Positions 8,301 through 60,400 of a stretch of 64,000 nucleotides of DNA are shown one piece after another (position 1 is the stretch's first letter; every line of letters starts with the position of its first letter). Location: NCBI GenBank assembly GCA_964035545.1, contig OZ037765.1, positions 32,053,504-32,117,503 on the forward strand, given 5' to 3'. The translations under genes and the position numbers were made by a program. Origin of the DNA: Bugula neritina (lineage: Eukaryota > Animalia > Bryozoa). The notes below the pieces were generated by a model. It saw only the letters and a program-made list of their open reading frames with translations. It was not told where the DNA came from and did no database searches.

Positions 8301-9914
8301 GTTTATTCATCCTAGAAATATAGTTATACCCCAGATACAAACCCCATTACATCAATTATTGCAAATGTAAACCATGATCATTGAAAATCATAAATTCATG
8401 TTGAACAATTATCTGTATAAATATGTATCATATTAAAACACTTTTAATATAAGCATTAGTAATAGTCTGATACTTAGGAAGTTAGAGTTAGTGTTACACT
8501 TACTGTTACTAACAGTAACAGTAACACTAAGACTAAGAGTAAGACTAACAGTAACAGTATGAGTATGACTATCACTATGAGTAAGTCAAAGTGTAACACT
8601 AACAGTATGAGTAAGTGTAACTCTAACAAATTAGTAATACTATAGTATTGGTATTACATTTTGATTTAGTTTTACTGATATAGATTAAGATTGCCCATTA
8701 CTCATAGTCATTATATTATTATTTAATCATTTTGTTTTATTTTTACGAATACTAATACTAATAGTAATACTAATAGACATAGTGATAGTAGTTATTCTGA
8801 TATTTTCAAATTTATCATTATCATTATGACTATAAAAATAATGTGCGTGTAACTAAGTTAAGTATCAGTATGATACATATTTTATAATATTAATTGAATA
8901 TTACAGTAGTACTAGGTCTAGTAGCTATAAATGAAAGTAATTTTATTTTAAATTGATTTGTATTTTATTTCGGACTACAAATATAATTTTTTGTTTGACT
9001 TGCAGTTGCTTAAGTTTTCTGTTTCATAAATATGGTTTAGATTATTGATAGAAAACAAGCGTTGTTGTTATCTGAATATTCAAAATTTCACACTGCACAT
9101 CAGAAAAAAATTAATCTAAATGCTTTTATTTAGTGTGTGACTGCAACCAAGCAAAATAAAATGACATTGACATTTTTTTTGTTTTATTGATTCTCTCCAT
9201 GTGACCCAGTTTTTAATAGATATACTTTAATTTATAAATTAGAATATTTGTTAATTATTAAATAAAATAAAAGTTATATTGTAATTGTTGTCAGTCGTAT
9301 GAGATTAACAGTAAAAGAATAAAATTAAATGCATTCATTATACAATAATAAGGTTTCTATAAATGAAATTTTGTTCGGAGTTATTTGTGCTCCTAGCAGT
9401 TTTATTCCTTATGAGATAATCGTATCTACTTTTTACTAATGTAGCCCAATGGCCCCTTGATAGCGTAGCTGAGAGTGTTGAATGTAGAAATTTCAGACAG
9501 TAATCAGTAATTAGTTGATTTTGTTTTTGTTTTTAACGCTTTATCAATCATAGTTTCACACTACCAGATGTAAAAATTCTCTTGGGGCAGGTGCATTGTT
9601 GCAGATTCTACTGATAGCTGTAGTTCTAGCAGTAATTTATTGGGTTAGAAGCTGTCTATATTCAGCATCAGTCAAGCTTTATGAAAGATCTAAGCTGAAC
9701 AACGGCACATCTCTACACTCAATAGGTTTTAGTGATGGAGCTATGTAATAACCTTGAGGTCATGTATGAAAAATGTCTAAGGTATATTTATTATGTTTAG
9801 AGTATTATTTGACCGTGGCGTTGCTGTGGTGTGCATTGAGTAGCAGAGTGTCCATCTCTGTGGATACAGGCAGAGGGAGTGACGAGGTATCCCCCTCACT
9901 TTCAGCTATGAGCT

Positions 9915-12900
9915 ATGGATCCTGTCTATGAGAAACGTCTTGCTGGCTCTCCTTTGTCATCAGTAAGTACCTCTGTATTATTTTACATACAATAAAGTAA
10001 TACTTTATCTTGAGAAACTTAATATACGGCTATACTGTAGTAAGAACCTTACCCCAGCTCTGTGAGGTGTTGGTTATTGCCTAGTGGATCAGAACCCTGA
10101 TCTACTGGCCCACAAGTGTTAGATGTGTGAGGCAAACTCTACCAGAGCATTGATAATTTCATCCAATCAAAAAATATGCTGTTATGTCACCTGGAAGCGG
10201 TCAAGCCTTGTTGCTAGTGCAGTTTAAGGCTCATTTAAAACTGTTACCATCGGTGTTTCTAATAGTAATGGTGGCTTTAGGCAAAATCAGTTTTTGTGAC
10301 AAGTACCGTAATATAATGTTGGTTGTTAAATATTCTACGTAGCCTGTGAAACCACAAAACTCTAGCCCGATTACTTCACCCACGAAGCTCAGCTACGGTG
10401 ACAGATTTATACCGACCAGGAGTGGAGCTCGCTGGCACATCAACTTTGACTCACCCAACGTGGAGAAGGAGGCTGCTATCCGATGCTCTCCACAAACCCA
10501 GTCGAGGAAATCAAAGGAAGTCCCTTCTGTTGAAGGTAAATAGCTGGAGTTTTCTCTCCTGATGAACAGATATTTCTTTATTGTTATCAGTGGGTAATAA
10601 TAGCCTTGACTTCTTTATAAGCAATGCTAGTACAAAGTAGTGATTAGGTTTTTCCTATTCTCTTCATGCCTTGAAGTGTCACTTATTTTATGTACGTATG
10701 TGTGTATATCAGGGTTGGAGTAATTGTAATTTGTAAAATTGTAATTGGTTGTAATTAATTACATTTTGTCAAGTAATTGAATGTAATTTTTAATTGATGT
10801 ATAAAATTGTAATTGTGATTAATTGCATATCTAATGTAATTGAGTTTTACAATTATATTGTAATTACGTATCAATTACTCCAAAGTTTTAAATCTTAAAA
10901 ATTTCACACTTTTCTTACCATGCCAACTATTTAATAAAAAATTAAGTGTATTATTAATCACTATTGAGATTCTCCACTTTCAAAATTTCCAGGGTAGTTG
11001 GACTTATATTTACCCCTTGTGAGAACAAAAGTAATTATAACTGCAACTAATTATATTCATATGTAATTGACCCCAACCCTGAATTGTATATATGTTGTAT
11101 ATTGAGGGAATTACAAAACTTGAGTATAATTATTCAGGAAACCTTGACTCGATAGCCTACCAATGCTTGCTGAAGAATGAGTTGCTCGGAGCTGGTATAG
11201 TAGATCTAAAGCACTCCTCCAATCTCCTGTCAGATGGTGTTGCTGACCCTAGCGGCAGCGCAGCTAATACGGTTGGCTCTGTCAGCTCCATCAACAACGC
11301 TAGTAGCTCTCACAGTTCTCCTACGAATGGCTCTTGTGGCGGTATGAGACGCAGAGTGCTGTATCCTAAAGAAAACACCAGCCTCTTTCAGGTACTCAGT
11401 CTAACAGATATGCTTTATGTCAAGTATTTGCAGCCCAAATTTGACTTATAATCTTATCCTGAGGGCAAGGAACTTGGCAGCGGTTCTCTGTGTAATGTTG
11501 GTAAATTTCTTTCTCAGATTTTCTTTAATGGGATTTTTTATTATATAATCTCTTTCTAACTTTGTGTTTCGTCACTTGTTATGGCATTGCGTTAAACTAA
11601 CCTAACAGAATGCTGTGTTATAGTATCGAGTGCACGGTAAGAATATAAAAGACGACACATCACCCTATTCTCTGTCTCCAGTCGGTGAAAACAGCCAGAA
11701 ACTACTTCGATCTCCTCGTAAGGTGAGCCTATACTTGATATTCTCTGCCTACGTCAGCCAATCAGGTGATAGCATACAGCAAAATCTTTATCTGTAACTA
11801 TATACCAATACCTTGGATTCATAGTGCATCAGTACGAGAGAACATAATTCCTATTCTGACCAGTGGAAGTAACTCTTCATAATCATTCACCAAAGTTACC
11901 ACCTACTGTGGCTATTCACTCAGTATGTATATGTTTACAGGCTCAAAGGAAGATTCCGCGTGTACCGTTTAAGGTGCTGGACGCTCCGGAACTGCAGGAT
12001 GATTTCTACTTGAACCTGGTGGACTGGTCCGCCCAAAATGTGCTCAGCGTGGGCCTTGGTTCCTGCGTGTATCTGTGGAGTGCCAACAACAGCCAGGTGG
12101 TGCGGCTCTGTGATCTGTCAGTTGAGTCTGACACCGTGACCTCAGTCTCCTGGGCAGACAGGGTCAGTATGTTCTCTTCTGCACTCTAGTTTTCTTCTCT
12201 CTTCTGCACTCTAGTTCTCTTCTCTCTTCTGCACTCTAGTTCTCTTCTCTCTTCTGCACTCTAGTTCTCTTTTGCACTCTAGTTTTCTTCTCTCTTCTGC
12301 ACTCTAGTTCTCTTCTGCACTCTAGTTTTCTTCTCTCTTCTGCACTCTAGTTCTCTTCTCTCTTCTGCACTCTAGTTCTCTTCTGCACTCCAGTTCTCTT
12401 CTGCACTCTAGTTCTCTTCTCTATTCTGCACTCTAGTACTCTTCTTTCTTCTGCACTCTAGTTCTCTTCTGCACTCTAGTTCTCTTCTCTCTTCTGCACT
12501 CCAGTTCTCTTCTGCACTCTAGTTCTCTTCTCTCTTCTGCACTCTAGTTCTCTTCTCTCTTCTGCACTCTACTTCTCTTCTCTCTTCTGCACTCCAGTTC
12601 TCTTCTCTATTCTGCACTCTAGTTCTCTTCTCTCTTCTGGACTCTAGTTCTCTTCTGCACTCCAGTTCTCTTCTCTCTTCTGCACTCTAGTTCTCTTCTC
12701 TATTCTGCACTCTAGTACTCTTCTGCACTCTAGTTTTCTTCTCTCTTCTGCACTCTAGTTCTCTTCTTTATCCTGCACTCTAGTTTTCTTCTCTCTTCTG
12801 CACTCTAGTTCTCTTCTCTCTTCTGCACTCTAGTTCTCTTCTGCACTCTAGTTTTCTTCTCTCTTCTGCACTCCAGTTCTCTTCTCTCTTCTGCACTCTA

Positions 12901-15496
12901 GTTCTCTTCTGCACTCCAGTTCTCTTCTGCACTCTAGTTCTCTTCTCTATTCTGCACTCTAGTACTCTTCTTTCTTCTGCACTCTAGTTCTCTTCTGCAC
13001 TCTAGTTCTCTTCTCTCTTCTGCACTCTAGTTCTCTTCTCTCTTCTGCACTCTAGTTCTCTTCTCTCTTCTGCACTGTGTGCATGATGTTACAACTAGTC
13101 ACTGTATGATAGTGCATCTAGTCACTGTATGTATTGACAGTGTCTTGTATATTCCCAGGGGAATTATGTGGCCGTGGGCACTAACAAAGGTTACGTACAG
13201 ATCTGGGACGTGGCGGCCACCAAACGAGTCAGTCACTTCTCTGGGCATACGGCGCGTGTCGGTGCTCTGGCCTGGAACGCTGACCTTTTGTCGTCTGGCA
13301 GCCGCGACAGAAACATCTTACAGAGAGACATACGGTCGTCTGAAGGGGTGAAGAAGCTGACGGGTCATCGGCAGGAAGTGTGCGGTCTCAAGTGGTCACC
13401 TGATCACCAGCACCTCGCCTCCGGCGGGAATGATAACAAGCTGCTTGTGTGGAACGCCTCGTCCAGTAATACTCCTTTGCAGACCTATTCAGATCACGTG
13501 GCAGCCGTAAGTGTATATTGAATATATATGTCAGTGTACGTATGTCAGTGTATGTATGTCAGTGTATGTATGTCAGTGTATGTAATGTATGTCAGTGTAT
13601 GTAATGTATGTCAGTGTATATATTTATTTGCATATCAACGAGTAACATATAAAGACTGCACCTTATAGCACACCTTATAGCTCTAAACATTATAGTCATA
13701 TGACCTGTTACCTTCATCAAACTCTTGCTTAGAAATAAGTTGCCTGCAATGGGATTCAAACCTGCCCATCACCATGTTCAGCCCAGGAATTCCTGTGCCT
13801 TGTTTTGACTCCATTGTTTCTGTAATGTCTCAGGTAAAGGCCATAGCCTGGTCTCCCCACCAGCACGGTCTGCTGGCTTCAGGAGGGGGCACGGCCGACC
13901 GATGCATTAGATTCTGGAATACTCTAACTGGACAACCGCTACAGTCTGTTGATACCGGCTCTCAAGTTTGTAATCTTGCGTGGAGTAAACACTCCAATGA
14001 GTTGGTTAGTTTTTACTCTTTACTACTCTGTACTCTGCTACTCTACTACTCTGTACTCTACTACTCTATACTCTACTACTCTCTACTCTACTACTCTCTA
14101 CTCTACTACTCTCTACTCTACTACTCTACTACTCTCTATCTACTACTCTATACTCTACTACTCTACTACTCTGTACTCTACTACTCTATACTCTACTACT
14201 CTATACTCTACTACTCTATACTCTACTACTCTATACTCTACTACTCTGTACTCTACTACTCTCTACTCTACTACTCTCTACTCTACTACTCTCTATCTAC
14301 TACTCTATACTCTACTACTCTACTACTCTATACTCTACTACTATCTACTCTATACTCTACTACTATCTACTCTGTACTCTACTACTCTTCACTCTACTAC
14401 TCTCTACTCTATACTCTTTTACTCTGTACTATACACTATGAACTCTGTTGTTTAGGTAAGCACTCACGGCTATTCTCAGAACCAGATTCTTGTATGGAAA
14501 TACCCATCTCTGCTGCAAATGGCCAAGTTGACTGGTCACTCCTTTAGAGTATTATATTTAGTACGTATACATCTTTCATCATACAACTTGAATTTAAATA
14601 ATGTTTTCTAATTTAATATTCTTGTTTTTGATACCACAATCATGACATTGACCTTTCTTGCCACATTCCTTGTTTCCATAGTAAAATTATATGTTGGGCT
14701 CTTACTACAGGCAATGTCTCCCGACGGTGAAGCCATAGTAACTGGTGCTGGGGACGAGACACTCAGATTCTGGAATGTTTTCAGCAAAACTCATTCAAAC
14801 AGGGTAAGTTTGGCGAGTGTTGTCATGCCAACACATGCTTCCTGTCTACTATTCTACTAAGAGCTCACTTGATTGGGAAAGCACAAGTTTATTTTTGAAG
14901 ACCAAACATCTGTTCATGTTTTAGTCTCTACCACAATGTCATTTAGCCGAGTTGTTTTACCAAGTGAAACTGTTGGATTTCACATTTGCTTACTGCTATA
15001 TTGCCTCTTCATTTCTATAAAATTTGAACGTGAAATACGCAGAATGAAAGTATTTTTATGAATATGTGCTGTAAAAACACTAGAAAATATTTCTATTTTT
15101 GTGACGCAAAGCTTGTTGCTGGTAAACTTGCTTCTTTCTAAATTTCAAGCTAAATTATCTAATTAAGTTTATGAGGCTGGAGCAATAGGCTGATACTATA
15201 AACTGCAATTGTAAGACTGAAAAATAACTTAATGTTTGCATTTTGTTCCGAAAATGTAAGGATGCATCTTTGCTTGAGTCACAAGTGAACTATGACCTCA
15301 GCGATTGGCCCGATATAAGTTATTTTTTCTTGAGTTCTATTTGAGAAGGCACTACGGCCAGTAAGCCAGAATGTTTTACCTCAACTAGTTGTTGAAACTT
15401 TCATTGATATGTTTTGCTTTGTTATAGGCTTCACAATATTTATGCCTTTTGTAGGACTCAAAGTCCGTTCTTAACTTATTCAACAGAATACGATAA
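9915..15496 (+). CDS. FZR1: Fizzy-related protein (APC/C co-activator Cdh1)
   Basis: N-terminus [10 protein letters not shown]-box [29 protein letters not shown]40 repeats ([26 protein letters not shown]) and C-terminal IR tail (LNLFNRIR*). About 10 coding exons. Confidence 0.97.
10710..11081. mobile_element. Non-autonomous DNA transposon (MITE, hAT-like ends) in an fzr1 intron
   Basis: Terminal inverted repeats CAGGGTTGGAGT...ACCCCAACCCTG and many internal GTAATT/AATTAC motifs. No clear TSD. Confidence 0.65.
12172..13076. repeat. ~900-bp pyrimidine-rich minisatellite (CTGCACTCTAGTTCTCTT plus optional CTCTCTT)
   Basis: Visible tandem units begin ~10 nt after the donor at 12163. Confidence 0.97.
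14010..14432. repeat. Intronic CTACT-based minisatellite
   Basis: Tandem TACTCTACTACTCT(G/A/C) units fill most of the fzr1 intron. They are the source of the YS/LYSTT pseudo-ORFs. Confidence 0.95.
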
Positions 15497-16333: not shown

Positions 16334-18177
16334 TCACTTCAAGTGTTTGAACAGAGAAACAGCAACCTGCAACACACATAGCAAGCTTATAGGATAATAT
16401 AACTCTATTCTACAGGCATGTAACAATTAACGCCATGTTTTGATACGGTACTCTCAATTGAATTTTGCATTGATGCAATCACCATAAGCTACAAAATATA
16501 GATTTTCCTAATTTAGTATCAAAATACTTGCTTTCATATTAAATTCATTTAGAAAATAATAATCTCGTCAGTAAGAACCTAGTTTGTAGTGCTGTGCATT
16601 TTGATATCAGGATAATTGAAACCCAAAATGTTAGTAGATATCAACATGGTGACATGAGTAATTACACAGAATAGACAGGTATACCAATATTCTATTGATC
16701 TATTGAAAGAGTTTTGTATCTTAAGTTATACCTTAGCATCCCTGCAGTGGAGAAAGTCATAAAGCTCCTGCTCACAAGTTTCGCTAGTGTTAGAGCGAGA
16801 GCTAACTCTCTCAGTGCATGTATCCAACTCCCTTTGATATTTGGAGCATGAACTAGCACATTCCTCTTTCAAGTTTAGTTGCGGGTCCTAGATGTAGTAT
16901 GAAGTAAACAGTGAAGCGTCACACTATACTCTATAGCATATAAATTGAAATACTACATCTTTATACTATTTTGTGTAGAACAGTATGCTTAGCCAATAAA
17001 TGCATCCACCAGGTTCACTTATGTCAAGAACAAATACTAGTTGAAAATATAACAAGTTTAAAGAAAAATTCCATAGCCGTGAGAAAGGTTTAACAACAGC
17101 ATTCTTACAATGATTGTGCCAAATGCAAATAACACGCATTGGTAGCTATTAGGCATGCAATGTAAAGTAAAGCAGCATACTGATCAAAATTAAAATGTAG
17201 GTGAAAATATAGGAAACATGCTGTAACTCAGAAAATTCGTCATCCTACAGACCTCTACATCAACCTCCTCCTCGTCTTCGTCAGAATTCTCTGGTTCACC
17301 ATCATCTGCTTCCTGTCAACATACACCATGATGTATATTGTTATTATTACTACACGTGTAGACTTTGATGTTTAAACTTTATCTAGCTATCCAATATAAA
17401 AAAAGTAAAACGAATAATTCAATTTAAAAACTATGCCAACACCCGTCCTATTACTGGGGTACTGGTAATCAAACAACAACACTTACAAGTTACAATACCA
17501 ACACAGTCATAACGATTGTCATTGTGATATTTGAGTGCGATACTGAGCACTATTATTACTAGTGTGGGTGTAGAATTAGACACATCACTCCGAGTCTACA
17601 ATCACACCGACTCTCAATCTTAAAACTGATGTTCACACTTATAATAATTATCATTGGCATAATAGTAATAACTGAAAGTTTGTCATGATGATTATGATTA
17701 TCATAAGCATAGTGATATTCACTATGACTATAATATTAATATGATATTCATAGTCATTCAAAATTACTCTAAGTCGAAGAATAAATGTTACATTTACTTT
17801 AATACTAATACAGTATTACTATTACGAATACAGTAATAGTATTACTAATAGTAATACTAATACTAATAGTAATACTAAGTCAAAGTGTAAGTGACAAAAA
17901 TGATTCAAATACTAATAATTATACTTATTCTTAAACTAATATTTATAGTTATACTGTTATAGTAGCTTATCCCGGCTTATATTTATACATTAACTTATAG
18001 TTATTAAACATTCTGACTTCTATTTTTGGCTTTACGTCTGAGTTCTGAACGTACAGTTTCATTTGTTTCAGTTTCTTCAACTTCTACTTCATCTTCTTGC
18101 CCTTCGCATTGTTCTTCAACTTCTGATTCATTTTCGGCAGCGCAAATTTTGAAATAACTATTAAAAATCGATGCCAT
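16334..18177 (-). CDS. UQCRH: Cytochrome b-c1 complex subunit 6 (hinge protein)
   Basis: Four short exons, all below the ORF-track cutoff: MASIFNSYFK...acidic N-terminus | EADDGEPENSDEDEEEVDVE | DPQLNLKEEC...CTERVSSRSNTSETCEQELYDFLHCRDAK | VAVSLFKHLK*. This matches the UQCRH motifs CxERVSSRS and EELFDFLH...LFxxLK. Confidence 0.92.
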
Positions 18178-31786: not shown

Positions 31787-33749
31787 CTTTAATAACTATT
31801 TGTATGGCTTTTTACCACCAGTTGATGTTGTGTTATTCAATTTCCTTTTCTGTTTTCACATCAACAATGAGAACCTAAAATAGCAACAATGACAATTGGT
31901 AGACTGTATCATAATCTAAATCATAACAAAATTGCAGCCTTATGATTGTCATTACGATTAGGCATTAGCATAATAAATTATATCATAATCATAATGAAAT
32001 TGAATATCCTTATCAATATGAATATGATGATCATGATGATCGTCAATCACCATGATTATCACCATCACTGAATCTGATAGTCATACAGTTACACGCATAG
32101 TGATACTGATGTCAGTGTGATAGTGATACTCATATTGATAGTGATACTGATAGACGATAGTGAAGACTGAAGTGATACTAATACTTCAAACTTCGAGTTC
32201 AGTCAGAGTGATCATGAGTTCATCATAATATTAATCATGATAATTAACTGGTAACCATAATAAGAATAATATTCATATAGATTATTGTGTGACATTGGTG
32301 TGATTATGACAGACAGCTTGCGCTAATAGACATGTCAACTTCCAGTGGTAGTTAAAAATTTATTATTTACAGCCATGGTGATGGACATAGGACGTGGTTT
32401 CAACTCTGAGAGGATATTAAACAAACTACTTACAGTTGACACGCTAATAAATTACCCCTTAGATTTCTAGAAATTATCAAAATAAAAGATCTTGCGTTTT
32501 GAAAAGTTATAAAGATATTGCGGATGCAAAAACAAAACAAGATTCAGCGCTAATTTTAAAACGAGTCAATTTATTTGTTTTCTTTTTTAAATCAATATCT
32601 CGGTGCCAATTATTTAAATTGCGCTAATTTTCATCATTATGATTATCGTATATTCATATACTTTAACTTATTCATATTGTAATTGTATTTGTTATACTTA
32701 TACTTATAGACATAGTTGATAGTGACACTCTGATAGTTATGCAGTAAACACTAAATCAGTAAATGTAATAGTAATAGTATTGCTATTAGACTTAGTATTA
32801 CTATTAGTATTACTATTACAGTATTAGTATTACTATTAGTATTACTATTACTAATGCTATTACTATTAGTATTAGTATTACTAATAGTAATACTAATACT
32901 ATTAGTATTACTATTAGTATTAGTAATACTAATACTAATATAATACTAATACTAATAGTAATAGTATTACTATTACTAATACTAATACTAATAGTAATAC
33001 TGTATAATCATAATGATAATGTACTAGTATTACTAATAGTATTAGTAATACTAGTACATTATCATTATGATTATACACTTTGACTTAGTCTTACAGTTAC
33101 CGTAATACTTGTTACTTGTTTAGTTGTACTAAAACTTAAAAGTAAAAGTAAATCTTATTACTATTACATATTACTATTAGTATTAGCATTAGTATTAGTG
33201 TTACATAAGTTATTTAGTTCTTCAACTTGCTCTTAGTCTAAGTCATATAGAAATTATATTATTATTTATAGTTAATAACTATAAGCATAATGATAATCTC
33301 TAGTACTATAAGTATATAACTATGTCTACTAATACTAATAGACCCTTCCCACTTAGGTCATCACTTACCGCCCCTTCGCCACATTGGGACTGGCACTGCT
33401 AGTATAATTAGTATCAGTATACTGAGTATACTGATACTAATAATACTAATAATACTGTAGATTGAGGTGTAAATATTGTAAACATAGTAAATTATCATTA
33501 TGGCATTTAAATATGCACTGTAAATTTTATTATAATCATAACTATAGTGCTTTTGAGTAGAACAAGACTATTGAATTCATTTTTCCTTTTTTGCTACCCT
33601 TTTGTTTATAACAGGTTAACGGTTCTATTACTGAAATGACCAAATTCTTTTTTTCCTGTAGCATTTTTATAAGTTTTTCAAGTCTAAGTTATTGCACTCA
33701 TAGCTGTAATTATACTCAATGATCTGTCAATCTCTGATTTATGTTGTAG

Positions 33750-36700
33750 ATGTCTGAAGTGGAAGGCTCAACCCTATTTTCTTCACTACAATATTACATC
33801 GCTGGGAAGATTACTCCTGAGGTATGTTCAAATAAACACATTGCCTGATGTTTTATATTTATTTGTCATATATTTAAATTGTTTCACGATTATTATAAAA
33901 TTGTAGGCTCAAGGAATTCTCGACAAAGGTGCAGCAAAATCCAACTCGTACTTAAGTGAGTTGGTGAAGATAAGCATTACAGACACTACAGACAACGAGG
34001 ATGAATACTCGGAAATAACAGATATTTATGATATTCCTGTCGTGTCCTGTGATTGGGTCATCTTGTCTCACAAGTGCGGTAAACTTTTGCCCACTAAACC
34101 CTTCCCTCCTAAGCAAACGTCTGACCAATTGTTTGCCAACAAAGTCTTTGCTGCGAGTCACGTGGAGAAGAGTGATTTAGACTCGCTCTGGGCTATGATC
34201 ACGTTTCATGGAGGATCTACGCAAAGATCAATGACTGAAAATGTTACTCACTTGCTGTGTACCGATACCAAAGGCAAGAAGTACGGTTTGAGCGAAAATA
34301 GATTTAAAGTCAAGGTGGTGACTCCGGATTGGGTGGTGGACTGTATTCGGGCAAAAAAATTAATTAGTGAAATGGAGTATCACCCAAAGTTGCTCGCTAA
34401 TTCTTCAAATATGCTTCAAAGGATTGTGTCTCCAGCTATTCCTCTAGCTACGGCCAAAGTGACAGTACCAATATCTTCCACAACTGCGCCTCAACCAACC
34501 ACCCCGTCATCAGCCACTTTCCCAACCATATCTGACTATCCACTACCTCCACCTGCTAAGACCACCAGCAAGTCTCCAGTTCACCGTAAGAAGGCAACTC
34601 CAAAGGCCTCTCAGCCCAGTCCTTCACCAATGATTTCTCCGCCACCCGTAGATTTCCAATCGGGATTGTCGCATGTAGCTCCTGGATATCTGCAGCAGCC
34701 GAGGTTCACACCGCCACCCACCACAATGCCACCGCTAAGCAACCCTCAACAGCCTCTACGCTCCCGCCAAGTATCTCCACAGTTTTCAAGTCACATGGGT
34801 CAAGGAACGTACAGTCCTACTCCACCTCACCCGGAGCAGCAATCTACACAGGTAAAGGAAATAGAGGTTAAGAGTCTGATTGTAAGGCCATTCATATGAA
34901 ATACACCGTAATAAATCTATACATATATATCAACTCTTGTCTGTTACAGCCGGAAAGACATGTGAATAGAGGATTACAGAAAGCTCCAGTGATGTCTCAC
35001 CATGCTACCTTACCCTCTCACCCCAATATGCCCCCTCACCCTCACTCTCACTATCCTAACCTACCCTCACACATGCTCCATCCCTCCGCTGACTCTGCTG
35101 CCTACCCTCCTATCCATTACACGGGTGCGGCAGCGCGTCAGTCTCCTGTGTCTCCCGGTATGGCCAGACACCCTCTCAACTCACACAGTCAGCGCAGCTC
35201 TCCTGGCAGCAGCAGGACTCCTCCCATGCTTAACTTAGGTCACATGACTGAGGTACCATATCCATCACAGGCATCGCTGCCAGAGGAAACTCCTATTATC
35301 AGAATGAGTAGGTGTCAGAATGAGTGAGTGTCAACATGAGTGAGTGTCAACATGAGTAGGTGTCAGCATGTATATGTGACGTGAGGCTTTCTTCAAATAT
35401 TAACTAAGAAATATAACAGTATTTATTTATTTTTCTATTGCTTAGCCAAAATTGTTATGTTGTTACAGTCTTAGGGTGGACACTAGTTTTTGGGTCTTAA
35501 GCTAACTTACTTTTGTACATTCACTAATAGAAAAAACTTCCATGCTCAAAATTTCATCCCGGCATATTATCTATGATTGCTTCTTAGCTTTTCTTTGAAT
35601 AGTCTGATGTTACCTTACACCTTACCTTTCTACTAGCAAATATGGCAGCCTTTCCAATGGGCAGTGAAGTTTCCACCGTACCTCAAAGGAAGTCTCCTAT
35701 AGCCTCAGGGAATTCCTCCTCTAGGAGTCATTCTCAGTCTAAGAGTCCAGTTAATGCTCAGCCGTTCAACGTGTCAGTTATTAAGGTGAGAATTGCCGTT
35801 TATCCTGTTTATTAGCTAATTTACTTTTACACTCATATCAGCATATCATGAAAGTGTATCTCCAGATTTACGATTACCTGTGCATTCTTTTTTTCTGCAA
35901 TTCCACAAGTTTTATAGTTGATAACTGGCCAATTGCTCTATGCAGGCTTTTTACTCATACAACTGTTGATAAAAAGCTTAGTTTTGTAGGAATTGGTCTT
36001 TTTGTTTCAGAAATCATTGCTTCAAAAGCTTTTTTGATAAAGCTATATGTGCACACTTTGTACACTTACATTTATGTGTATTTGTGTTGCATTTGCATTT
36101 GCCACTGGCACATTCATTAGTTTACTTCTAGTTATAAAGTTTTTTACTGTTTGAATAGCTTTAGGAGCTCAACTTTGAAATCATGTTAATTTTTCATTTC
36201 TACCCATGATTGTATATTGCATGTGAAATTATATTCTAATTATCTTTTAAATGTTCCATTGCAGATTTAAACAAATATTTCAGGCTCTCAACTGCCTCAT
36301 TTAAGTTGTGTTGTGTTATTGTTACAGCCAACCAAATCAGCAGGCTCTGTTGGTGAGGCTGGCTCTCGAACTCCTACCTCAGCTGACAGATCACCTGCAT
36401 CAAGTGTCACCAGGCTGACACCACCTGTGACTAACATGGTGACTGCTCATGCAGGTGGCAGTGAGGCTAATGACACTCCAGTGTTATATTATGGCTACGA
36501 TAGTACTGAGTCATTGCCAACTGACATGTGCCTAGCAGGTTGTATATTTTATATGGGAGAATATCTCAAGACAGATCCCTGCGAACAGTGGATCATGGTC
36601 AGTTTATTATCATGATGATTGACTTAATTAAATAATGCAATTTAATTAGTTGATAATGTAATTGAATAAATCAAATAATTTATTTGAATTTAAACAATAA

Positions 36701-46805: not shown

Positions 46806-47174
46806 TGTATAGCGCGCAGTAGCTGTATAGCACACGCAGTAGCTGTATAGCGCGCAGTAGCTGTATAGCGCGCAGTAGCTGTATAGCGCGCAGTAGCTGT
46901 ATAGCGCGCAGTAGCTGTATAGCGCGCAGTAGCTGTATAGCGCGCAGTAGCTGTATAGCGCGCAGTAGCTGTATAGCGCGCAGTAGCTGTATAGCGCGCA
47001 GTAGCTGTATAGCGCGCAGTAGCTGTATAGCGCGCAGTAGCTGTATAGCGCGCAGTAGCTGTATAGCGCGCAGTAGCTGTATAGCGCGCAGTAGCTGTAT
47101 AGCGCGCAGTAGCTGTATAGCGCGCAGTAGCTGTATAGCGTGCAGTAGCTGTATAGCGCGCAGTAGCTGTATAG
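46806..47174. repeat. 18-bp tandem repeat (CGCGCAGTAGCTGTATAG), ~20 copies
   Basis: Expanded only in RTF2 copy A. Copy B has a single CACGCAGTAGCTGTATAG at ~56223. Confidence 0.97.
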
Positions 47175-48252
47175 CATGTGTATGGAAAGAGAATGAATAT
47201 GTGGAGGTGAAGTATGAGTGAACCTGTGTTTTCCATTCATTTCAAGGCCAGTGACGGGGCAAATGTAGGGGGCGCAGTTTGAGATGTCCATTTCATTATC
47301 AGTTCTGGGCAAGGCAGGGTTATCTGTTAGCTGCAACGCTTTCACATTCTTCAGTCCTCTGATGTGGGCCAACTTGGCAACACCCTCGTACTTTTGCTTG
47401 TCAAGTAGGCACTCCAACACTGATTCCTTGTTGTACAGACTGTGAGCAAACAAAATAACCTGTTTACTATATAAAAGAACAATCTAGTTCATTAAAATGC
47501 ATTCCAATATTGAAATGAAATATGAAAACAATACTGCCCAATTTATAAAAGATATAACTTTAGTTATTACGAAATGCTAAAGAACAAAATCATAAGAGTT
47601 TAAGGCCTTCAGCATGGCATTACAAAACCTTCTTAACAGGCAGTGCTGAAGCTTCATTTCATATACTTGAGTCATAACCAAATTTCAGTTTGTATGTGTA
47701 CATTACTTTCCTACAATCAAGCTCTGTTGTGATTTGAATGTAACAGTTGGACTTTGGAAATAATCTTATTTGTCTTATTCAAGCATACACATTCTATTCA
47801 TCACAGCGAGTCAAGTATGAACTGAGTTATTAAAATCACAAGCAGAGTGGTATATATTAGGAGTGTTGACTTTAGGAAACCTTACGGAACCATATGGGCG
47901 CCATTATGCCGAGATTGGTACCGCGAGTTTATATAAGTTATAAAGGAAAAATTTTGCCACTTTTGTTATTTTATTTTTTTTCTATTTTATGTGTACATTT
48001 TTTTTAGTTTTGTTTATTGGTAAAGTTTTTAAACACATTTTTAATGCACATAAAATTAAAAAAAATTAAAACTCACTCATGCACGTAAATACAAAGCTAT
48101 AAATTTTAAGCTTCGCTGTGATTACAATGTGAATATGAATTGAATAATGCTTGCAATAACCATTTTACACAAAATACGTTACAGTTGCTATAAATATGAG
48201 ACTAGTAAATTGGATGCAAATAGGCACGGTAATACTACTTAAGTTATGCTAT

Positions 48253-48908: not shown

Positions 48909-48942
<34 letters not shown>

Positions 48943-48979
48943 TATACATGCCACATATATATATATATATATATATATA

Positions 48980-50803: not shown

Positions 50804-50806
<3 letters not shown>
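48980..50806. mobile_element. Nested non-autonomous TIR element sitting in (TA)n
   Basis: 14-bp perfect TIR CAGGGATGTAGTGG/CCACTACATCCCTG, subterminal TTCTAGGCCATAC and CCATACG..CGTATGG repeats, GC-rich subterminal block at 49020-49095. No transposase ORF seen. Confidence 0.8.
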
Positions 50807-50869
<63 letters not shown>

Positions 50870-50919
50870 CATGCCAAATATATATTTATATATTTGGCAT
50901 GAATAATATATATATATAC

Positions 50920-51043
<124 letters not shown>

Positions 51044-51789
51044 CATGCCAAATATTTACTACAAATTTCAAAACTAGCATAAATTAAGTAGTATTACCGT
51101 GCCTATTTGCATCCAATTTACTAGTCTTACATTTATAGCAACTGTAATGTATTTTGTCTAAAATGGTTCTTGCAAGTATTATTCAATTCATGTTCACATT
51201 GTAATCACAGCGAAGCTTAAACTTTATAGCTTTGTATTTACGCGCATGATTGAGTTTTAATTTTCTTTTTAATTTCATGTGCATTGAAAATATGTTTGAA
51301 AACTTTACCAATAAACAAAACTAAAAAAAATAAACACATAAAATAAAAAATAATAAAATCACAAAAGTGGCAAAATTTTTCCTTTATAACTTATATAAAC
51401 TCGCGGTACCAATCGCGGCATAATGATTTTTCATGCTTTAAAGTCAACACTCCTAAATATACCACACTGATCACAAGACTATTATCATTGCAACATAGTA
51501 TGCTTGTGCGTAATGGTATCGATTGGAAATTCCCCACGACACGGCGGGCGACATGATGTCATGAATTAGTGCATGTATAAATACGGAATCACCTTCCATA
51601 TTCACAGGCCATTACTGGTTTCTGCAGAGGTAGTTGACTAATAGAGCAATCATTCCACTTGTCTTGTAGCTCATCTCTCTTTCTTACAAAGAGTTATGTT
51701 CTCTGCCTGATTACATTCAGTAACCCACAAGCTACTACACCTGTCAAACTAAGTTATTCATATAATTAAGCAAAAAGCTAAAATTTAAA

Positions 51790-54591
51790 ATGAGTCTCTT
51801 TGAAAAAATATTTGGTTCTAAAAAGAAAGGAGAGACTCCTTCTCCCCAAGAAGCAATTCAACGACTCAGGGAAGTGCAGGATATGCTTACGAAAAAGTCT
51901 GATTTCTTAGAGAAAAAAGTTGAACACGAACTACAAACAGCCAAAAAAGCTGGTACTAAAAATAAAAGAGGTAACTATCTCATACCTGCATCTTTCACCT
52001 TTATATATTGGTAATTTTATAAAACTAAATATCATTTTCATTTTGAAACTGATTGTGACGGTGTCTCATAGTATCACTATGAGTATGACTCTGAGTATTG
52101 TAATGGATTTTAACGCTCTAGTAATTATATCGCGTCACTATTATAATTGACTTGGCGTAACTTTCTAAATACCGGTCTTGATCTTGATCTTGATTGGGTT
52201 AAGTCCCAAGACCTCTCGAATTGTGGGACCCTCGGATCTATCCAGGCTCAGAAATCCGCTACTATCTCCCCCGTACGGAGCTCCCGGACAGTGCGCAACA
52301 GGAACCCCTGCAGGTACAGGCTCGAATCGCAGGCTATAGCATTGAAAGTGTTAATACGGGTATTCATGTTATGGTACTGTTAAATGTTGTAATTATAGCT
52401 ATGTTGTTGTGTTGTATAGATAATTACTGCAACAAATTACTACCAACTTTCTTACTGTCACTATACTTTATTCTATCAAATCTCAAAGCTAACTGACTCG
52501 CTTGATAAACAAACAGTATGTCGCAACAGTAAGCCTAGGGCTACACGGTGCGTATTTTCGCATGCGAAAATTGAAATCACGGGTAGCAAAGGTATCCACT
52601 GTGCGCGTTGAGAAAACATTCGCACTTGTCGCTCAGCATTTTCAACGCAAGTGCGAATCGTCTCTGTCATCGTCACCTAATTGGCTGGTAGTTATTCAGC
52701 TGTAATCTGTGTCAACCAATCAGGATCAACCCCATCTATATAAGTAACGCCTTCCGGCGCCCACTGCCAGTCTTGGACAGTATTAGTAGCTACTAGGATA
52801 ACTGTATGTAACTGCTCTATTATTTCTATATTTTTCTCTCTTTATGTATCATACTTTTACTCAAATATAATTAACTAAATACAGTTCTCTCATTCCATGA
52901 TCAACTTGTTAGGTTCTTCACATAACCTCAAAGTGGATATGCAGTAATTACTAGCACACAATAACACCCAATCTAGTAGTGCACAAAACTACAAAAATAT
53001 GCTACGTATTTCTGGTTTTGTAAATGAAAACTTGCTTTTCTCATTGTCTCTTCTTATTTAAGCTGTTGCACCATTTCCCTTCTTTTGTATTTTGTGTTGC
53101 TGCCTTTCCAACAGCTTTCCCATTTTACCTTGGCAGATATTGGGCATTTTTGTTGGTAAACAACTGTTTTTTTTTCAATTCTTAGTTGCCCTAGCAGCAC
53201 TAAAAAGAAAGAAGAGATATGAGAAGCAACTTCAACAGATTGACGGTACTCTCTCAACTATTGAGTTTCAAACAGAAGCATTGGAAAATGCTAATACTAA
53301 TACAGAGGTCCTCAAAGTCATGAGAACTGCTGGGCAGGCACTGAAAGGAGCCCATCAAAACTTGTATGTTATTAAGTCCTGTTTACCTTCTAAAGTTGCA
53401 AAAGCTGTTTTTCTAGCCTATTTATTTATAGTGTTCTCGACACAAATATATATACAATAAAAAAGTTGTAGAGCTATATTTTTGTCAACTCCGCTCATGT
53501 TATGTTATTGTGTTATATGTAACTGAGATTATTTCCGTACCCTACGTAGACATGTAGATCATGCACATCACCATGCATCATATTTTTCACATAGACACAT
53601 GTATTATATAATATGTTACACAAAGATGTATACAAAGTATATTATATTTCACATAGGGATGTAGATCAAGTACACAATATTATGGATGACATAGCCGAAC
53701 AGCAGGAGATAGCCAATGAAATGTCAGAAATAATCAGTGCTCCTGTAGGATTTGGACACGACTACGATGAGGTCAGCAATCTCCTTGAACTACGTAATTT
53801 CAAAATATATTCTTCGGATGAATTTTGTTGTATGTAACTCTCCTAATTTAAAAGTAACCAGACAAAACAAGGCTGGGTTTGTTTAATGGGCAAACAGGCT
53901 TTGAGATACCGTCATAGTTCAAATAATGTGAGTTTTAAAGCCTATACTATATAATGAAGTATGCATAAGACTAGCAAGAGTCCTGCTTAAACATGGCCTG
54001 GTGAAAACTTTCAGTAACTATTTTATGACCGTTAATTGCTTTCTGTTTACAGGATGAGTTGAACGAAGAGTTGGAGGCACTGGAAGAGGAAGAACTCGTT
54101 AGCCAAATTGTGGGTATAGATGAGCCAACCAGCCTACCCAGCGTACCTACCTCCAGCCTTCCCGCTGCCAGAACTACTAGTGAGTGTACAAGTACTGTCT
54201 AATTATGTGTTGTGTTGTTAGTCAGCATTATTGATTAATTGATTTATTATATATATTACACAGGCATGAAAACAGGTTGGGGAAATTTAGTCTAAATACT
54301 GGCTATAATAAGTAGACATGAACAAAGTTGGAAAAAAAGTCAGAACTCTGTTGGATTATTTAAAATAAAAGATCATTTAAAGTATTTACAATGTGTCGTA
54401 AAAAGCTACTTTTCGTTTGAAAGTTGTTGGAAGCAAAAATATGTTTAATTTGCTTTCTAATCATAGTTAAGCTTAGAGTATGTTTATGACAGCCAGAAGT
54501 ATTAATATGATTTCCTGGTGATGTTACAGCAACAGCGGCAGCGGAAGAGGATGATGAGATGGCTGAGTTGAACGCATGGGCTGCTGCGTAA
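51790..54591 (+). CDS. CHMP4: ESCRT-III subunit CHMP4/Snf7/Shrub, copy B
   Basis: Intact five-exon ORF with about 9 amino-acid differences from copy A and canonical splice sites. Confidence 0.88.
52099..52930. mobile_element. LTR-like fragment(s) in CHMP4 copy B intron 1
   Basis: Starts TGTAATGGATT...CGCTC, similar to the reverse complement of the solo-LTR end at 48656. GTAT occurs before 52099 and after 52515. A second block has CCAATCAG and CTATATAAG (52716-52745). Absent from copy A. Confidence 0.45.
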
Positions 54592-55437
54592 GGCTCTTGT
54601 TGACTTGTTTCAAAAAAGGTAAAATTGCAGTTTCTTCTTGAAATTTTGGATGCAAAATTATTTTGGCAATTAAAATGTGACGACCACCTGTGTGTGGTGC
54701 AATAATGTCTATTCTATCATTCAAAGGGTTTTTTTACATCTTAAGCTGCTTCTGTTACTCAACTATCTAATTAAAGCTGAACTGAGATAATTGTGAAAAT
54801 ATAACCTACATTGAAGGAAAAATATTTCCCATAAAGATGTTTTTCATTCTTGCATAATATTGTCTGCCTCTACCATGAAGTTCATTTTTTTTCTGAAGTA
54901 TATATTTCTATACTGTATAACCAAATGATTAGTTATATAATGTGATAGAGGAAGAAGTTAGATATATGAATATATATTTTAATGAGTGTTCGTATTTTAG
55001 GTCTAGTTGTATTTGTGTAAAGCCCTGTTACTCACCATCCTAACGAGATGTTACACTACAGCTATCACACCTAACTAGTACCTTAAGAGATGAACAGCTC
55101 AACTGCAAACTCTAACCAAAACTGCAAACTTAAAGTACTATTCAATAGACATCTAACTGTGTAGTATTGTATTTTATCAACCCAGCTGTATTATATCATA
55201 GTGTATGCCATATTTTTATATTGACAACATATTATATGCTCTTAATGTTACAATAATAATCGTTTGTACTGCTATTAACTATAAAATAAAGACCTAAATT
55301 ATTATACAAATTAAAATAGTTGTTACTCATCCAAAGTGCTCATTAAGTTATTTATAAAACGTTTACACTATACTATACACAGGAGTGACATAAATATCAA
55401 CAGAACATATAAAAATACAGAGAAAATTCAAGTCAGA

Positions 55438-57930
55438 TCATCTGAAGTACTGCGGGTTGAATGACACCCACCCCGAATGTTGAGCACCCTGTTTCTTAGC
55501 TTCGTCGCTGCTAGTGAACAGTGACTTGTACACTTCACTCGACTTGGGGTCATTTTGAACAGACAGAGATTTGCTTTTTACAGTCTTTGCTGCCGAACTG
55601 GCAGCAGTAGCAGACTTTGACTTGCTTTTGTCCAACGACGTCTCGCCTTTGTCCGTGAGCTTTGCTGCCTTTGAAGAAGGCTCCCCCTCGCTGTCGGTCT
55701 TAGCTTTCTTCTTGCCTTTCTTGGACTGTTTGGCAGCGAGTCTTCTCTCCTCCATTCGACTCTTCATCAGCTCAAAGTCAGCGTCATCTCCGTTTAGAAC
55801 TATTACATCGTCGGCAGCATAGGGCTTGGCACACTGACAACAATATACTATGTATACAACTCATATTTATGATACTCGACACTCTGTAGAGTATAACAGA
55901 GCTACCGTGGTTCAGCTTGCAATGTAAGTTGTGACAAGCTGACAGAAAATGTATCACCAGCTGACACTTCAAGGTTAACTAAGCAGAAATAATTTATGCT
56001 CAAGCCGAAAGTGATACTTTACGGGCAGGGCAGTGGACGTCCCTCACTGACCTTATGACAAAGAGATGAAGGAACCTCCTTGAGTGCTCTTTCAGAAATT
56101 ACACATCCACAGGTCCATATGAAGCAGAATCTGCAAAAAGCGTTGAAAATATAAAAAATATTTCCATATAGCACGTGTATAGCACGTGTAATCTCCGTAG
56201 CTCTAAGAATATATTTAATTTTCACGCAGTAGCTGTATAGCATGTGTATGGAAAGAGAATGAATATGTGGAGGTAAAGTATGAGTGAACCTGTGTTTTCC
56301 ATTCATTTCAAGGCCAGTGACGGGGCAAATGTAGGGGGCGCAGTTTGAGATGTCCATTTTATTGTCAGTTCTGGACAAGGCAGGGTTATCTGTTAGCTGC
56401 AACTCTTTCACATCCTTCAGTCCTCTGATGTGGGCCAACTTGGCAACACCCTCGTACTTCTGCTTGTCAAGTAGGCACTCCAACACTGATTCCTTGTTGT
56501 ACAGACTGTGAGCAAACAGGCAGTGCTGAAGCTTTCATTTCATATACATGAGTCGATAACCAAATTTCAGTTTGTATGTGTACATTAGTTCTCTACAATC
56601 CAGCTCTGTTGTGATTTGAATGAAACAGTTGGATTTGTAGAAATAATCTTATTTGTCCTATTCAAGCATACACATTCTATTTATCACGGCGAGTCAAGTA
56701 TGAACTGAGTTATTCCAGTCACAAGGCTATTATCATTGCAACATAGTACGCTTGTGCGTAATGGTATAGATTGGAAATTCCCCATGACGTCATGAATTAG
56801 TGCACGTATAAATACGGAATTACCTTCCATATTCACAGGCCATTACTGGTTTCTGTAGAGGTAGTTGACTGATAGAGCAATCATTCCACTTGTGTTGTAG
56901 CTCAGAAGTCTTGTCTTTCTATAACATAATCATATAATACTAAGAGGTGCATGAATACAGTTTGTCTCAAGTATAGTCATGCATGATAATGCAAGGGAAG
57001 TTTGTGTGAGCATGAATCATCAAGGCTGAATATTCCACTCTGTAAAAGCAATGATGCAACATAGCACTAGTAACTAGTAGTACACGCTAGAGATGAAAAC
57101 ACTGCCTCTGTGGAAAATACACTCCCCCCTTAATAAGAAGCTATTGTTATGTCATATACATGCCCAAACATGTCATTAGAAAAAAGAGGATAACCCTGAA
57201 ATTATATAAATTTATAGAATTTATATAATTTCAGTGACAAACAGGTCACTGGAGTGACTATGGCCTAATGTGTTATTTAGCTATTAGACTAGGGTTCAAG
57301 GTCAACAGAAGGCACAGCTAATAACAATATGGTTACAAAAATTTAAGAAGGTAAACTTGTTGATCAATTTTTATATAGAAGCCAGAAAAGAGGCAAGTCT
57401 GTTATCAACACAAGACATTTTGAAAATTCAAATTCACTAGCAAATAAATTTTATATCTGAATATAGATAATTTAACTGACAATGCAAACAGTAGAGGTAT
57501 GAATAAATCCACCAGATGCAGCCTAATTATGTAAATGTGTAACAGCTGATGTTTCCGTAGTAATCAGTCGACATATATTATTTGTTGGGTCGAATTGATC
57601 TCTCACCAAAAAGAGCTTTTCAACTTAACAATTCTATTAGAAAATCTGTCGGCAATAAGGCTCACAATCAATGATCACTTCAGTTTGAATCTACACACTA
57701 CTCATTAAACCATTGAAAGAGAACGCCATGGCAACAGAGTACATAGGAGAGCCTTTGTTTTACATGCAAAGCCAATACGATTCACAACACTACGTATTTT
57801 AACAAAGCAAGAGCAAAATTAACAACTTCTGATTATAGTGAACTCTAGGTATAAGATTAACCTTTTCTGGTTTCTTTTTCTCTTTCACCAACTCATCTCT
57901 CCTAGGAATAGTTCCACCATCTGCTCCCAT
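55438..57930 (-). CDS. RTF2: Replication termination factor 2 (RTF2/RTFDC1), intact copy B
   Basis: MGADGGTIPRRDELVK start, CSISQLPLQKPVMACEYG, LYNKESVLECLL, HIRGLKDVKEL, YICPVTGLEMNGKHRFCFIWTCGCVISERALKE and SEVYKSLFTS...WVSFNPQYF. Confidence 0.95.
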
Positions 57931-58341
57931 CTTGTGTGGCCAAACAACAGCTACATAAGTAAAATTTATGGATAGATTAAAAAAGAGTTACTAAACTAAA
58001 ATCTTTAATAAAACAAACTTGTAACACTGGACAGTAATAGCTGAGATACTTGAAAGAATAAGAAAAAAAAGGAGATTAATTATAATCAGACAATCATGCA
58101 CATAGAATAATTTACAAGTTCTAGAAAAGTGTAGCAGTACAAGTGTTGTCTGACTAAAGAAATGATGCCTCACAAAAAACTGAGCTTTTACAAGAACTTG
58201 ATGTTCAACACAGAAAAGAATGATTTTAAAGTTTTAAATACTGTAAGTTGCCACCATTGAAAAAATAACTAAACTATTGTAAACAGAACCAAGTTGATGC
58301 AACCTAGACAGTATGAGGTAGGGAGGCTAACAAATAATCAA

Positions 58342-58401
58342 TTGTGTGTGCGTGTGTGTGTGTGTATGTGTGCGTGCGTACGTGTGCGCGCGTGTGTGTG
58401 T
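58342..58401. repeat. (TG/CG)n microsatellite
   Basis: Alternating purine-pyrimidine tract. Confidence 0.9.
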
Positions 58402-60400
58402 GGTTTTACTTTTTTTAATACACACCAACAAATTAGGATAAACTTAAAAATTGGTTGTCATAAAAACATGATAGTTGGTACTTTTATGAGCATTTCAAAT
58501 ATGTACAAAAAAGGCGTAAAGAGAACTCTACAACAATAAAGTTCTACATTTGATCATCACAGTAAAGTTGTTAACGTGAAGCTAACACAATTATGCTATA
58601 AAATTGATTACAATATCAGTAACCAGGCATAGCAATCACAATCGATCACAAAGTTCATCCCGGTTGATATGATAAATTATTATTTAGGGAAGATTTGGCG
58701 AGTCTTGACTTCCACTTACAGTCAGTCGGACTCAGTCAGTGAGTATCAACATTATAGATTCAGGAACTTGCTTTCAGTTAAAGACCAAAAGCAGTTTAAT
58801 TTATATAAAAATTTATATGACATTACTCATACTATTAGTACTATTGATAATTGAGTTTTAAAATAGTCACAATAGAGTTTCACGAACTGAAAACTAAATT
58901 TGATCAACATAATTAAAAACAAGTGATAACCAAAATGATAAAGAACTATAAGTTCAACTGTAAAGGTAAACTATCAGCTAAAGTATAACTAACTGTATAA
59001 CTGTAAGACTAACAGTAACAATAAATCTAAGAGTAACACTAACTCTAACTGAGTATTACTATGAGTATGACTGCAACACTAATTATAACTATAAGTTTGA
59101 ACATCAGCATGAGTATGATTGTAACTATGAGTGTAACAGTAATACTAGCGACTAACACCAACAGTAACACTGTCAGTAATTGTGTAAGTCAAAGTGTACC
59201 TTACACTTAAAATTACACTGTGAGTCATAACATGGGAGTTATCATAAGACTAACTTTAAGTCAGTAACAGCAAGTGTGTCAGTGTGACTGTGAGTGTGAC
59301 TGTGAGTTTGACTATCATACACACAGCCATACTTACTAACTAACTTACAGTCACAGTGATACAGTCCATCAGTATGACTATGAGCATCACATCCAGTTTC
59401 ACTATCACTAAGATTATGAGTATGACATTGACTATCAGTATCTAGATCACTATCAGTAACAATATCAATATGAATATCAATATGGTATAAATCTATGACA
59501 TTGAGTTTGACTTTGAGTGACTATCACCATGACTCATGAGCATGAATATTAAGTTTAACTATTAAACTTATAGTATAAGAGTTATAGTATGAGCATTGTC
59601 ATTATCGGGCTTATGATTGTCATTATGATTATCAAATTAAATTAAATAAATTTAAAATTATCATAATCATAATGATAATGATAATCATAATGATTAATGA
59701 TTAAATCATTAATCATCATTATGATTATGATTATCATTAAAATATTAGTGGCCATCATTGTCAATAATGTAATTTATGATATAGATAATATCATTATTAT
59801 GCTATCAAATAATGACCATTAGTATTACTACATTGCCAAAATAAAAATGATTATAAATTAGAATGTAATTTAGATATCGAAAACCCAAGAAACTTCAAAA
59901 CAAAAAAGGACGGATTTAACTTTTAAACATTTAAAAATCTACTCGCTCATTTTCGGAAAATCAACGCTCACCAAATATATTTATTGTTGATTCATGTAGA
60001 ACAATAAATAGAGATCAATGCTTGCCAAGACCTAGAACTTTAGGTTTTATCAAATAGGTATCGTAGGCCCGTCAGCTTTTATTAGTTAATGTTGGTTCTC
60101 TACTACGTTTTGGAGGAGTAAAAATTGAGTGAGCTCAAGTTCTGGTTTTATTCTGCACCATGTCAAGTGTGAAATGATAATCATAATGATAGTCATAAGC
60201 CTAAGGGCTCAAAGTTATCATTATGGCAGTGAAAATCAGTGCTACTGCGTTTACGTTTAGTTTCACTACTACTTTAACTTTATGTTAGGCTTAGAGTAAG
60301 TTGATAAGCCAATAAAACTAAATCTAAAGGCGTAAATGTAATGCCATTTTGATTTTTATTAAATTTGATAATAATATTATTATTATGTAATGCCATTTTT

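Follow-up and report, generated by a model that had tools for sequence, protein, structure and literature searches.

A preferred fourteen-base word of the hexamer tracts beside gene starts in the bryozoan Bugula neritina

A 64,000-base stretch of the Bugula neritina genome (contig OZ037765.1, positions 32,053,504 to 32,117,503 of assembly GCA_964035545.1; this whole stretch is called the window below) contains four exact copies of the 14-mer TAAGTCAAAGTGTA, here termed W1. All four lie inside tracts that follow a strict six-base pattern of A/T (W) and C/G (S) positions, WWWSWS, and that occur in non-coding DNA beside gene starts. We found that W1 is a genuinely favoured word, neither an accident of a small alphabet nor a by-product of a simple one-sided mutational context, and that it is one of several preferred words of the six-base pattern and not a unique one. 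We estimate at about one in two (0.5) the probability that W1 is a favoured word of the tract pattern, generated or maintained by a tract-intrinsic, flip-invariant rule, that is, a rule unaffected by the exchange of bases for their complements in place. The 14-mer on its own is a minor feature; its value is as an entry point to the puzzling hexamer tracts that lie next to bryozoan promoters.

W1 and its sister word in the window and in the genome

The preliminary description of the window, which was made from the sequence alone, reported four exact copies of W1 in four separate hexamer tracts and regarded the recurrence as non-random, and both statements hold. The four copies (Table 2) compare with 0.01 exact matches expected from dinucleotide shuffles, and the 134 copies in the whole assembly compare with 5.2 expected from base composition for any one of the 14-mers considered here. 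W1 is the sole 14-mer found in the window at four or more loci that are more than 1 kb apart, the words of simple TAATAC/TAATAG repeats aside, and allowing up to two mismatches adds just two window matches, which adjoin copies 1 and 3. When the four copies are aligned with 50 bp on either side, identity stops exactly at the edges of the 14-mer and only the periodic A/T positions of the tract pattern are common beyond them, in agreement with the earlier statement that the flanks cannot otherwise be aligned. As had also been proposed, every copy lies in register with the hexamer pattern, reading TAA GTC AAA GTG TA. The tracts consist mostly of TAA-SWS, TAT-SAS and TAA-TAS units, and about ten regions of WWWSWS tract are present in the window, compared with none in shuffled sequence.

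Genome-wide counts were made over the whole assembly of 216,009,554 bases (Table 1); the published Bugula neritina assembly comprises 216.00 Mb, with 9 chromosomes and 20,264 genes (PMC11480708). W1 is about four times commoner than its pattern-conforming parent, which has T at position 7 (134 versus 32 copies), and makes up ~15% of the 64-word class of two-unit words with an AAA unit. This AAA class amounts to 0.096 of the canonical TAA class (913 versus 9,538), and a context-independent change from T to A at position 7 predicts 32 x 913/9,538 = 3 copies of W1, so the observed number is ~43 times higher. The distributions of words within classes refer to the first 100 matches listed in each search, all of them on contig C1. 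Among those of the AAA class, W1 accounts for 22 and a sister word, W2, for 20 (together 42), and every other word for at most four; the mixed G/C forms, GTC..CTG with two copies and CTC..GTG with three, are about ten times rarer than W1 or W2. Of the first 100 matches obtained with GTC and GTG fixed and the A/T positions left free, 34 have the AAA centre and seven the canonical TAA centre; W1 is the commonest single word, with 12. In the window, all AAA-class matches (4/4) are W1. These counts are direct observations, as are the register and the sister word.

Table 1. Copy numbers in the whole assembly, and shares of the corresponding 64-word class, for forward and letter-reversed words
Word or class	Forward copies	Letter-reversed copies	Forward class share	Reversed class share
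W1, TAAGTCAAAGTGTA	134	85	14.7%	12.5%
W1 parent, TAAGTCTAAGTGTA	32	12	0.34%	0.66%
W2, TAACTCAAACTGTA	141	73	15.4%	10.7%
W2 parent, TAACTCTAACTGTA	40	3	0.42%	0.16%
Top canonical word, TAACACTAACAGTA	840	149	8.8%	8.2%
AAA class, TAASWSAAASWSTA (64 words)	913	682		
Canonical TAA class, TAASWSTAASWSTA (64 words)	9,538	1,826		

The surroundings of W1 and W2, examined in 34 and 30 contexts respectively, are alike. In both, the flanking logos show an in-register TAASWS periodicity that is gradually lost over ~30 bp to the left and right. The word mostly has a G in front of it, and behind it comes TAA-C in the case of W1 and TAA-G in that of W2; the flanks have no other conserved feature. Of 33 W1 contexts, 21 had a coherent 48-bp stretch of the pattern in the register of W1, with a fit of 0.75 or higher to one or both sides of the word, compared with 12% of random positions scored at the best of six phases. 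The core GTC-AAA-GTG is found with AAA flanks too, and other 9-mer cores of the AAA type are enriched ~10-fold in the same loci. An all-against-all blastn comparison of the 64 loci revealed no element common to them at a constant distance from the word, and only tract-to-tract similarity was seen.

At four places W2 abuts or closely precedes W1. Two of these are copies of the composite TAACTCAAACTGTAAGTCAAAGTGTA, in which W2 overlaps W1 by two bases, at C3:696936-696961 and C3:27437791-27437816 (W2/W1 starts at C3:696936/696948 and C3:27437791/27437803), and looser pairs of W2 and then W1 start at C3:9314868/9314886 and C2:3589070/3589034. We also considered whether W1 marks the 3' end of a run. 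The logo hinted at such a tract edge, but the counts of run lengths were weak (18 versus 9 for W1 and 13 versus 13 for W2, with ordinary words in short runs too), and the idea was rejected.

Reversal symmetry and the origin of the word

Reversing the letters of a word amounts to flipping every base pair in place and then reading the other strand. Reversed W1 was considered as a neutral control (134 versus 85 copies, a 1.6-fold difference) and rejected, since it is itself a dispersed and favoured tract word: at the 20 loci inspected it lies in AAT-type tracts with flanks that cannot be aligned, and these are not transposon copies. Indeed, among the first 100 matches of the reversed 64-word class, the two commonest words are reversed W2 (15) and reversed W1 (11), and the reversed parents, with 12 and 3 copies in the assembly, are near chance. 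The class shares of forward and reversed words agree in all five word pairs compared (Table 1). The vocabulary is thus symmetric under reversal, which argues against base-specific readout by a protein and for a rule intrinsic to the tracts. As a separate observation, the whole tract vocabulary appears to keep its preferences when read backwards, which would make this a general property beyond the 14-mer; tracts of the TSA pattern, for example (AATGTS)n, are about five-fold rarer than those of the AST pattern.

W1 and W2 have the layout AAST-CA-AAST-GT-A, in which the junction dinucleotide CA is the complement of GT, and the reversed words have the layout AA-TG-TS-AA-AC-TS, in which TG is the complement of AC. 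In terms of the relations between neighbouring units, same or complementary, W1, W2 and both reversals are therefore the same arrangement. W1 itself reads TAA-GTC, AAA-GTG and TA, a TAA-type unit followed by its own copy with both junction bases complemented (..AAGT-CA-AAGT-GT-A..), the outcome being a single AAA unit set in a TAA-type run. Presumably, W1 is a preferred two-unit word of the six-base pattern (WWWSWS, with A-C/G-T triplets) that fills non-coding DNA beside gene starts, and a process that builds and reshuffles tracts, through unit copying and in-place complement flips, or else a flip-invariant constraint, could favour this arrangement. W1 would then arise and persist independently in many tracts, as would W2 and both reversed words, and it would not serve for docking through recognition of its individual bases. 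Its fourfold presence in the window would reflect an unusually tract-rich and gene-dense stretch together with a local excess. The predominance of W1 and W2 over the mixed G/C forms is the pattern expected if one unit copies the other. We infer both the copy-and-flip origin and the lack of a protein reader.

W1 resembles the promoter-proximal hexamer (A-C/G-T) tracts of this genome, which are apparently unpublished, in its WWWSWS register, in having AGT at both triplet positions and in its location beside gene starts. Ordinary tract words are free at the C/G positions, whereas W1 and W2 are fixed there and carry a non-canonical AAA unit, with a co-flip of two adjacent bases and identical, unflipped AGT or ACT centres. 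The tracts also share features with cryptic simple sequence and degenerate microsatellites that evolve by slippage, namely short tandem units, changes in unit number, mosaic runs and favoured combinations of neighbouring units. They differ, however, because slippage with random point mutation predicts neither the restriction of tract variation to A/T and G/C complement swaps, nor the reversal-symmetric vocabulary, nor the excess of a one-base variant over its parent by 4:1. The tracts are thus not a free-running random pattern, since their vocabulary is sharply non-uniform and its preferences are kept on letter reversal. What is new here is the uneven vocabulary, in which AAA-unit words are commoner than their parents, together with its symmetry under reversal, and any model of the tracts, whether as a mutational scar or as a regulatory code, must reproduce the word counts and the symmetry.

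Several points weigh against a flip-invariant rule intrinsic to the tracts. The 4:1 preference for W1 over its parent has no demonstrated mechanism, and it needs context on both sides of the changed base: among the first 100 AAA-class matches, GTC-AAA is followed by GTG in 22 cases, by CTG in two and by nothing else. This two-sided context is sharper than that of an ordinary mutational hotspot. The C/G positions of W1 are much less variable than those of ordinary tract words, which selection could explain equally well; the case for reversal symmetry is built on five word pairs; and four copies in 64 kb are improbable even after scaling for tract content (P = 1.7e-4).

A broader suggestion, which we make tentatively and hold to be rather unlikely, is that an undescribed process or reader linked to promoters has left its mark in the word preferences and in their symmetry, and that it senses the relations between units (same or complementary) and not the identity of their bases. 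Such a process might be a repair or copying pathway that swaps one or two adjacent base pairs for their complements during unit duplication, and such a reader might be a minor-groove-reading protein array. The most stable end-states would then be W1, W2 and their mirror words.

Competing explanations and the local cluster

Among the alternatives, the one that survives best, although we consider it unlikely, is that W1 is the binding site of a sequence-specific protein (a multi-zinc-finger architectural factor, an NR2E-type receptor on AAGTCA, or a high-mobility-group (HMG)/TCF protein on TCAAAG). Such a site would evolve easily from tract sequence through one substitution, and selection would retain it at some promoters. 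Its share of the 64-word class, its fourfold excess over the parent and the low variability of its C/G positions all mark W1 as a sharply defined word, and it is this sharpness that leaves protein binding some probability. The four promoter-proximal copies in one 64-kb window, and a mild excess of W1-W1 pairs genome-wide (given below), are also consistent with such a site. However, W2, which has neither AAGTCA nor TCAAAG, is the equal of W1 in abundance, register and flanks, and the preference for the reversed words is of similar strength, a result not predicted by base-specific recognition. Furthermore, the two central C/G positions co-vary (G..G or C..C among the first 100 matches listed) and are not degenerate, and W1 is almost never found outside the repeat pattern. 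Architectural zinc-finger motifs such as those of CTCF, ZNF143 and insect insulator proteins are comparable in being at least 14 bp long, present in hundreds of copies, promoter-proximal and found in either orientation. They are solitary motifs in unique sequence, with degenerate positions, unlike W1, which occurs almost only inside the repeat pattern and has co-varying positions and sister and mirror words.

The preliminary description had identified AAGTCA as a known nuclear-receptor half-site, and correctly so, as this is the half-site preferred by NR2E (Tailless/TLX/PNR-type) receptors (PMC2225407). The PNR/FAX-1 subclass requires a second half-site in the direct-repeat-1 (DR1) register, and binding of FAX-1 to monomer sites is negligible (PMC2225407). 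W1 has one AAGTCA, at positions 2-7 and after A/T-rich sequence, as in the response elements of Tailless, TLX, PNR and FAX-1; unlike these, no second half-site in the DR1 register was found in W1, where the one-base spacer is followed by AGTGTA, a 2/6 match to AAGTCA. The half-site accounts for only 6 of the 14 fixed positions of W1. Nor is the enrichment tied to it, since W2, with AACTCA replacing AAGTCA, has 141 copies in the same contexts, and the reversed words are enriched as well. The proposed role of W1 as a nuclear-receptor anchor, given the single half-site and the favoured words that lack it, is thus not supported, and the varying orientation relative to genes also speaks against it. 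The further proposal that W1 is a nucleation site for the tracts fails on numbers. Canonical unit pairs number 9,538 and genes about 20,000 (PMC11480708), compared with 134 copies of W1, so the word can be present in just a small fraction of the tracts; W1 is unable to seed tracts in general because there is only about one copy per 70 canonical unit pairs.

A similar argument disposes of a TCF-like core. The core of TCF/LEF-type HMG sites is TCAAAG, which W1 contains; W2 has TCAAAC in its place and is just as enriched, so the enrichment is not tied to this core. Matches to NK2, Myb, IRF, AP-1 and 5' splice-site motifs were considered as well; any 14-mer of the repeat pattern holds several such cores. 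Caution is needed before a word that arises from the repeat pattern is credited with a transcription-factor core such as AAGTCA of NR2E or TCAAAG of TCF.

The four copies in 64 kb are a real local excess. At the genome mean of one W1 per 1.6 Mb, 0.04 copies are expected per 64 kb, and the probability of four or more is 1e-7. Canonical unit pairs are 6.7 times denser in the window than on average (19 versus 2.8 expected), and scaling for this raises the expectation to 0.27 copies, for which the probability is that given above. Three causes may be considered for the cluster: luck, given thousands of windows and a large number of words; homogenisation over short distances, from one tract to the next; and selection acting locally. 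For homogenisation, short-patch gene conversion or ectopic copying between neighbouring tracts would have spread one variant pair of units, which would cover the cluster and not the genome-wide abundance; we find this doubtful. In its favour, the local density of W1 is ~100 times the genome mean, or ~15 times after tract-content scaling. Among the first 100 listed sites of each word, 15 W1-W1 pairs lie 1-64 kb apart (6 of them from the window) versus 5.6 expected (label-shuffle P = 0.0065), compared with six W1-W2 pairs versus about 10 expected. The excess is small when the window is left out (9 versus about 5), however, and W2 does not cluster with itself (5 W2-W2 pairs versus 4.2 expected). 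The four host tracts have more 12-mers in common with one another (mean 19) than with remote W1-bearing tracts (mean 8.8), but these come mostly from simple TAATAC/TAATAG runs, and the exact end of identity at the 14-mer edges in all four copies also argues against copied patches.

Restricted vocabulary combined with chance, in which W1 has no special status and any tract-rich window repeats some in-register 14-mer that is then picked afterwards, is a still less probable account. W1 with its 134 copies is indeed no commoner than the average canonical tract 14-mer (9,538/64 = 149) and far behind the top canonical word (840), and with ~3,400 windows and many words to choose from, a coincidence of four copies is to be expected somewhere. 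As an explanation of the genome-wide abundance, chance is nevertheless largely refuted by the excess over the parent-scaled expectation for a word with a non-canonical unit; in the window, too, W1 is the sole non-trivial 14-mer at four loci and the only AAA-class word.

That W1 is a fragment of a dispersed transposon or miniature inverted-repeat transposable element (MITE), or the product of a segmental duplication, is very improbable and is refuted at the sensitivity of blastn, since the 64 loci share no sequence at a fixed offset, the flanks of the four window copies diverge at once, and the only large duplication in the window detected by self-megablast (43.0-47.8 kb and 51.8-56.7 kb) holds no copy of W1. 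A single remote copy, L009 (G000:C1:8814420-8817433), could be taken in favour of a transposon, as it lies at the exact centre of a perfect inverted repeat of ~50 bp per arm that is hairpin- or MITE-like; it is unlike all other copies in this respect.

Host tracts, neighbouring genes and other features of the window

All four window copies lie within ~1-2 kb of a gene 5' end or in a first intron, judged by the distances to start codons or exon 1, and the label "promoter-flanking" that they had been given is fair for each (Table 2). The gene contexts named previously (fzr1, UQCRH, PAXIP1 and RTF2) are broadly confirmed, with the addition that copy 1, which lies 1.75 kb upstream of the first coding open reading frame (ORF) of the fizzy/cdh1-like gene, is also 635 bp from the start codon of an RRM/SR-like gene (7947, minus strand). 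The orientation relative to the nearest gene varies, as had been noted, being antisense at copy 2 and probably sense at copy 1. The UQCRH-like exon 1, a short piece, gave no Pfam match, and an exact look-up of its ORF, aimed at other individuals or assemblies, found no record.

Table 2. Coordinates of the W1 copies, their host tracts and the neighbouring genes in the window
Feature	Position	Strand	Remarks
W1 copy 1	8582..8595	+	within (TAASWS)n run; 12 pattern-fitting units upstream, about 6 downstream
W1 copy 2	17876..17889	+	end of TAATAC/TAATAG run; ~165 bp into UQCRH-like intron 1; antisense to gene
W1 copy 3	33074..33087	-	between mixed TAASWS run and TAATCA/TAATAS runs; 663 bp upstream of PAXIP1-like ATG
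W1 copy 4	59185..59198	+	end of mixed run; ~1.25 kb upstream of Rtf2 ATG
Copy 1 host tract	8460..8646		left arm (TTASWS)n flipping to (TAASWS)n
Copy 2 host tract	17764..17901		
Copy 3 host tract mosaic	32774..33210		
Copy 4 host tract mosaic	58976..59537		
RRM/SR-like gene, exon 1	7840..7947	-	RRM_1 Pfam match, E = 0.0045, partial
Fizzy/cdh1-like gene	first coding ORF 10346; WD40 start 11863	+	
UQCRH-like exon 1	18055..18177	-	acidic N-terminus; donor GTACGT inferred by eye
PAXIP1-like (BRCT) 5' coding exons	33750..34899	+	start codon 33750
Stop-free stretch holding Rtf2 exon 1	57802..57987	-	profile positions 1-25; ATG about 57930

The host tract of copy 1 changes polarity at a palindromic centre (..CTGTTAC/TAACAG..) within 8460-8560, and its (TTASWS)n and (TAASWS)n arms could pair as a hairpin. 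Copy 4 is followed by a short inverted repeat, AAGTGTA cc TTACACTT. In the first intron of the RRM/SR-like gene (7718-7854, minus strand), a tract opens exactly at the splice donor (..TATG/GTATGACTTTGAG..). Numerous units of the tracts, among them GTAAGT, GTATGA and GTAAGA, resemble the cores of 5' splice sites, and tracts in the sense orientation are thus dense arrays of U1-like sites. A coding reading of the tracts was rejected on inspection: four of the six frames are locally open, but stops return in adjacent units, and the fixed positions do not resemble those of codons.

The window contains further repeats. The tandem segmental duplication extends over 43016-47842 and 51755-56725 (~4.8 kb, 90-97% identity, offset ~9.4 kb) and overlaps the 3' part of Rtf2, and within its upstream copy an 18-bp unit (CTGTATAGCGCGCAGTAG) forms an array of 20 copies at 46805-47175. 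On the minus strand at 61081-62559, a 492-amino-acid ORF with a zinc knuckle and a retroviral-type aspartyl protease represents the gag-protease part of a long terminal repeat (LTR) retroelement, which adjoins the copy 4 tracts. Two tandem arrays, both CT-rich and strongly strand-skewed, lie downstream of the WD40 exon of the fizzy-like gene, one of a 25-bp unit in ~39 copies (12173-13076) and the other of a 15-bp unit in ~28 copies (14023-14434).

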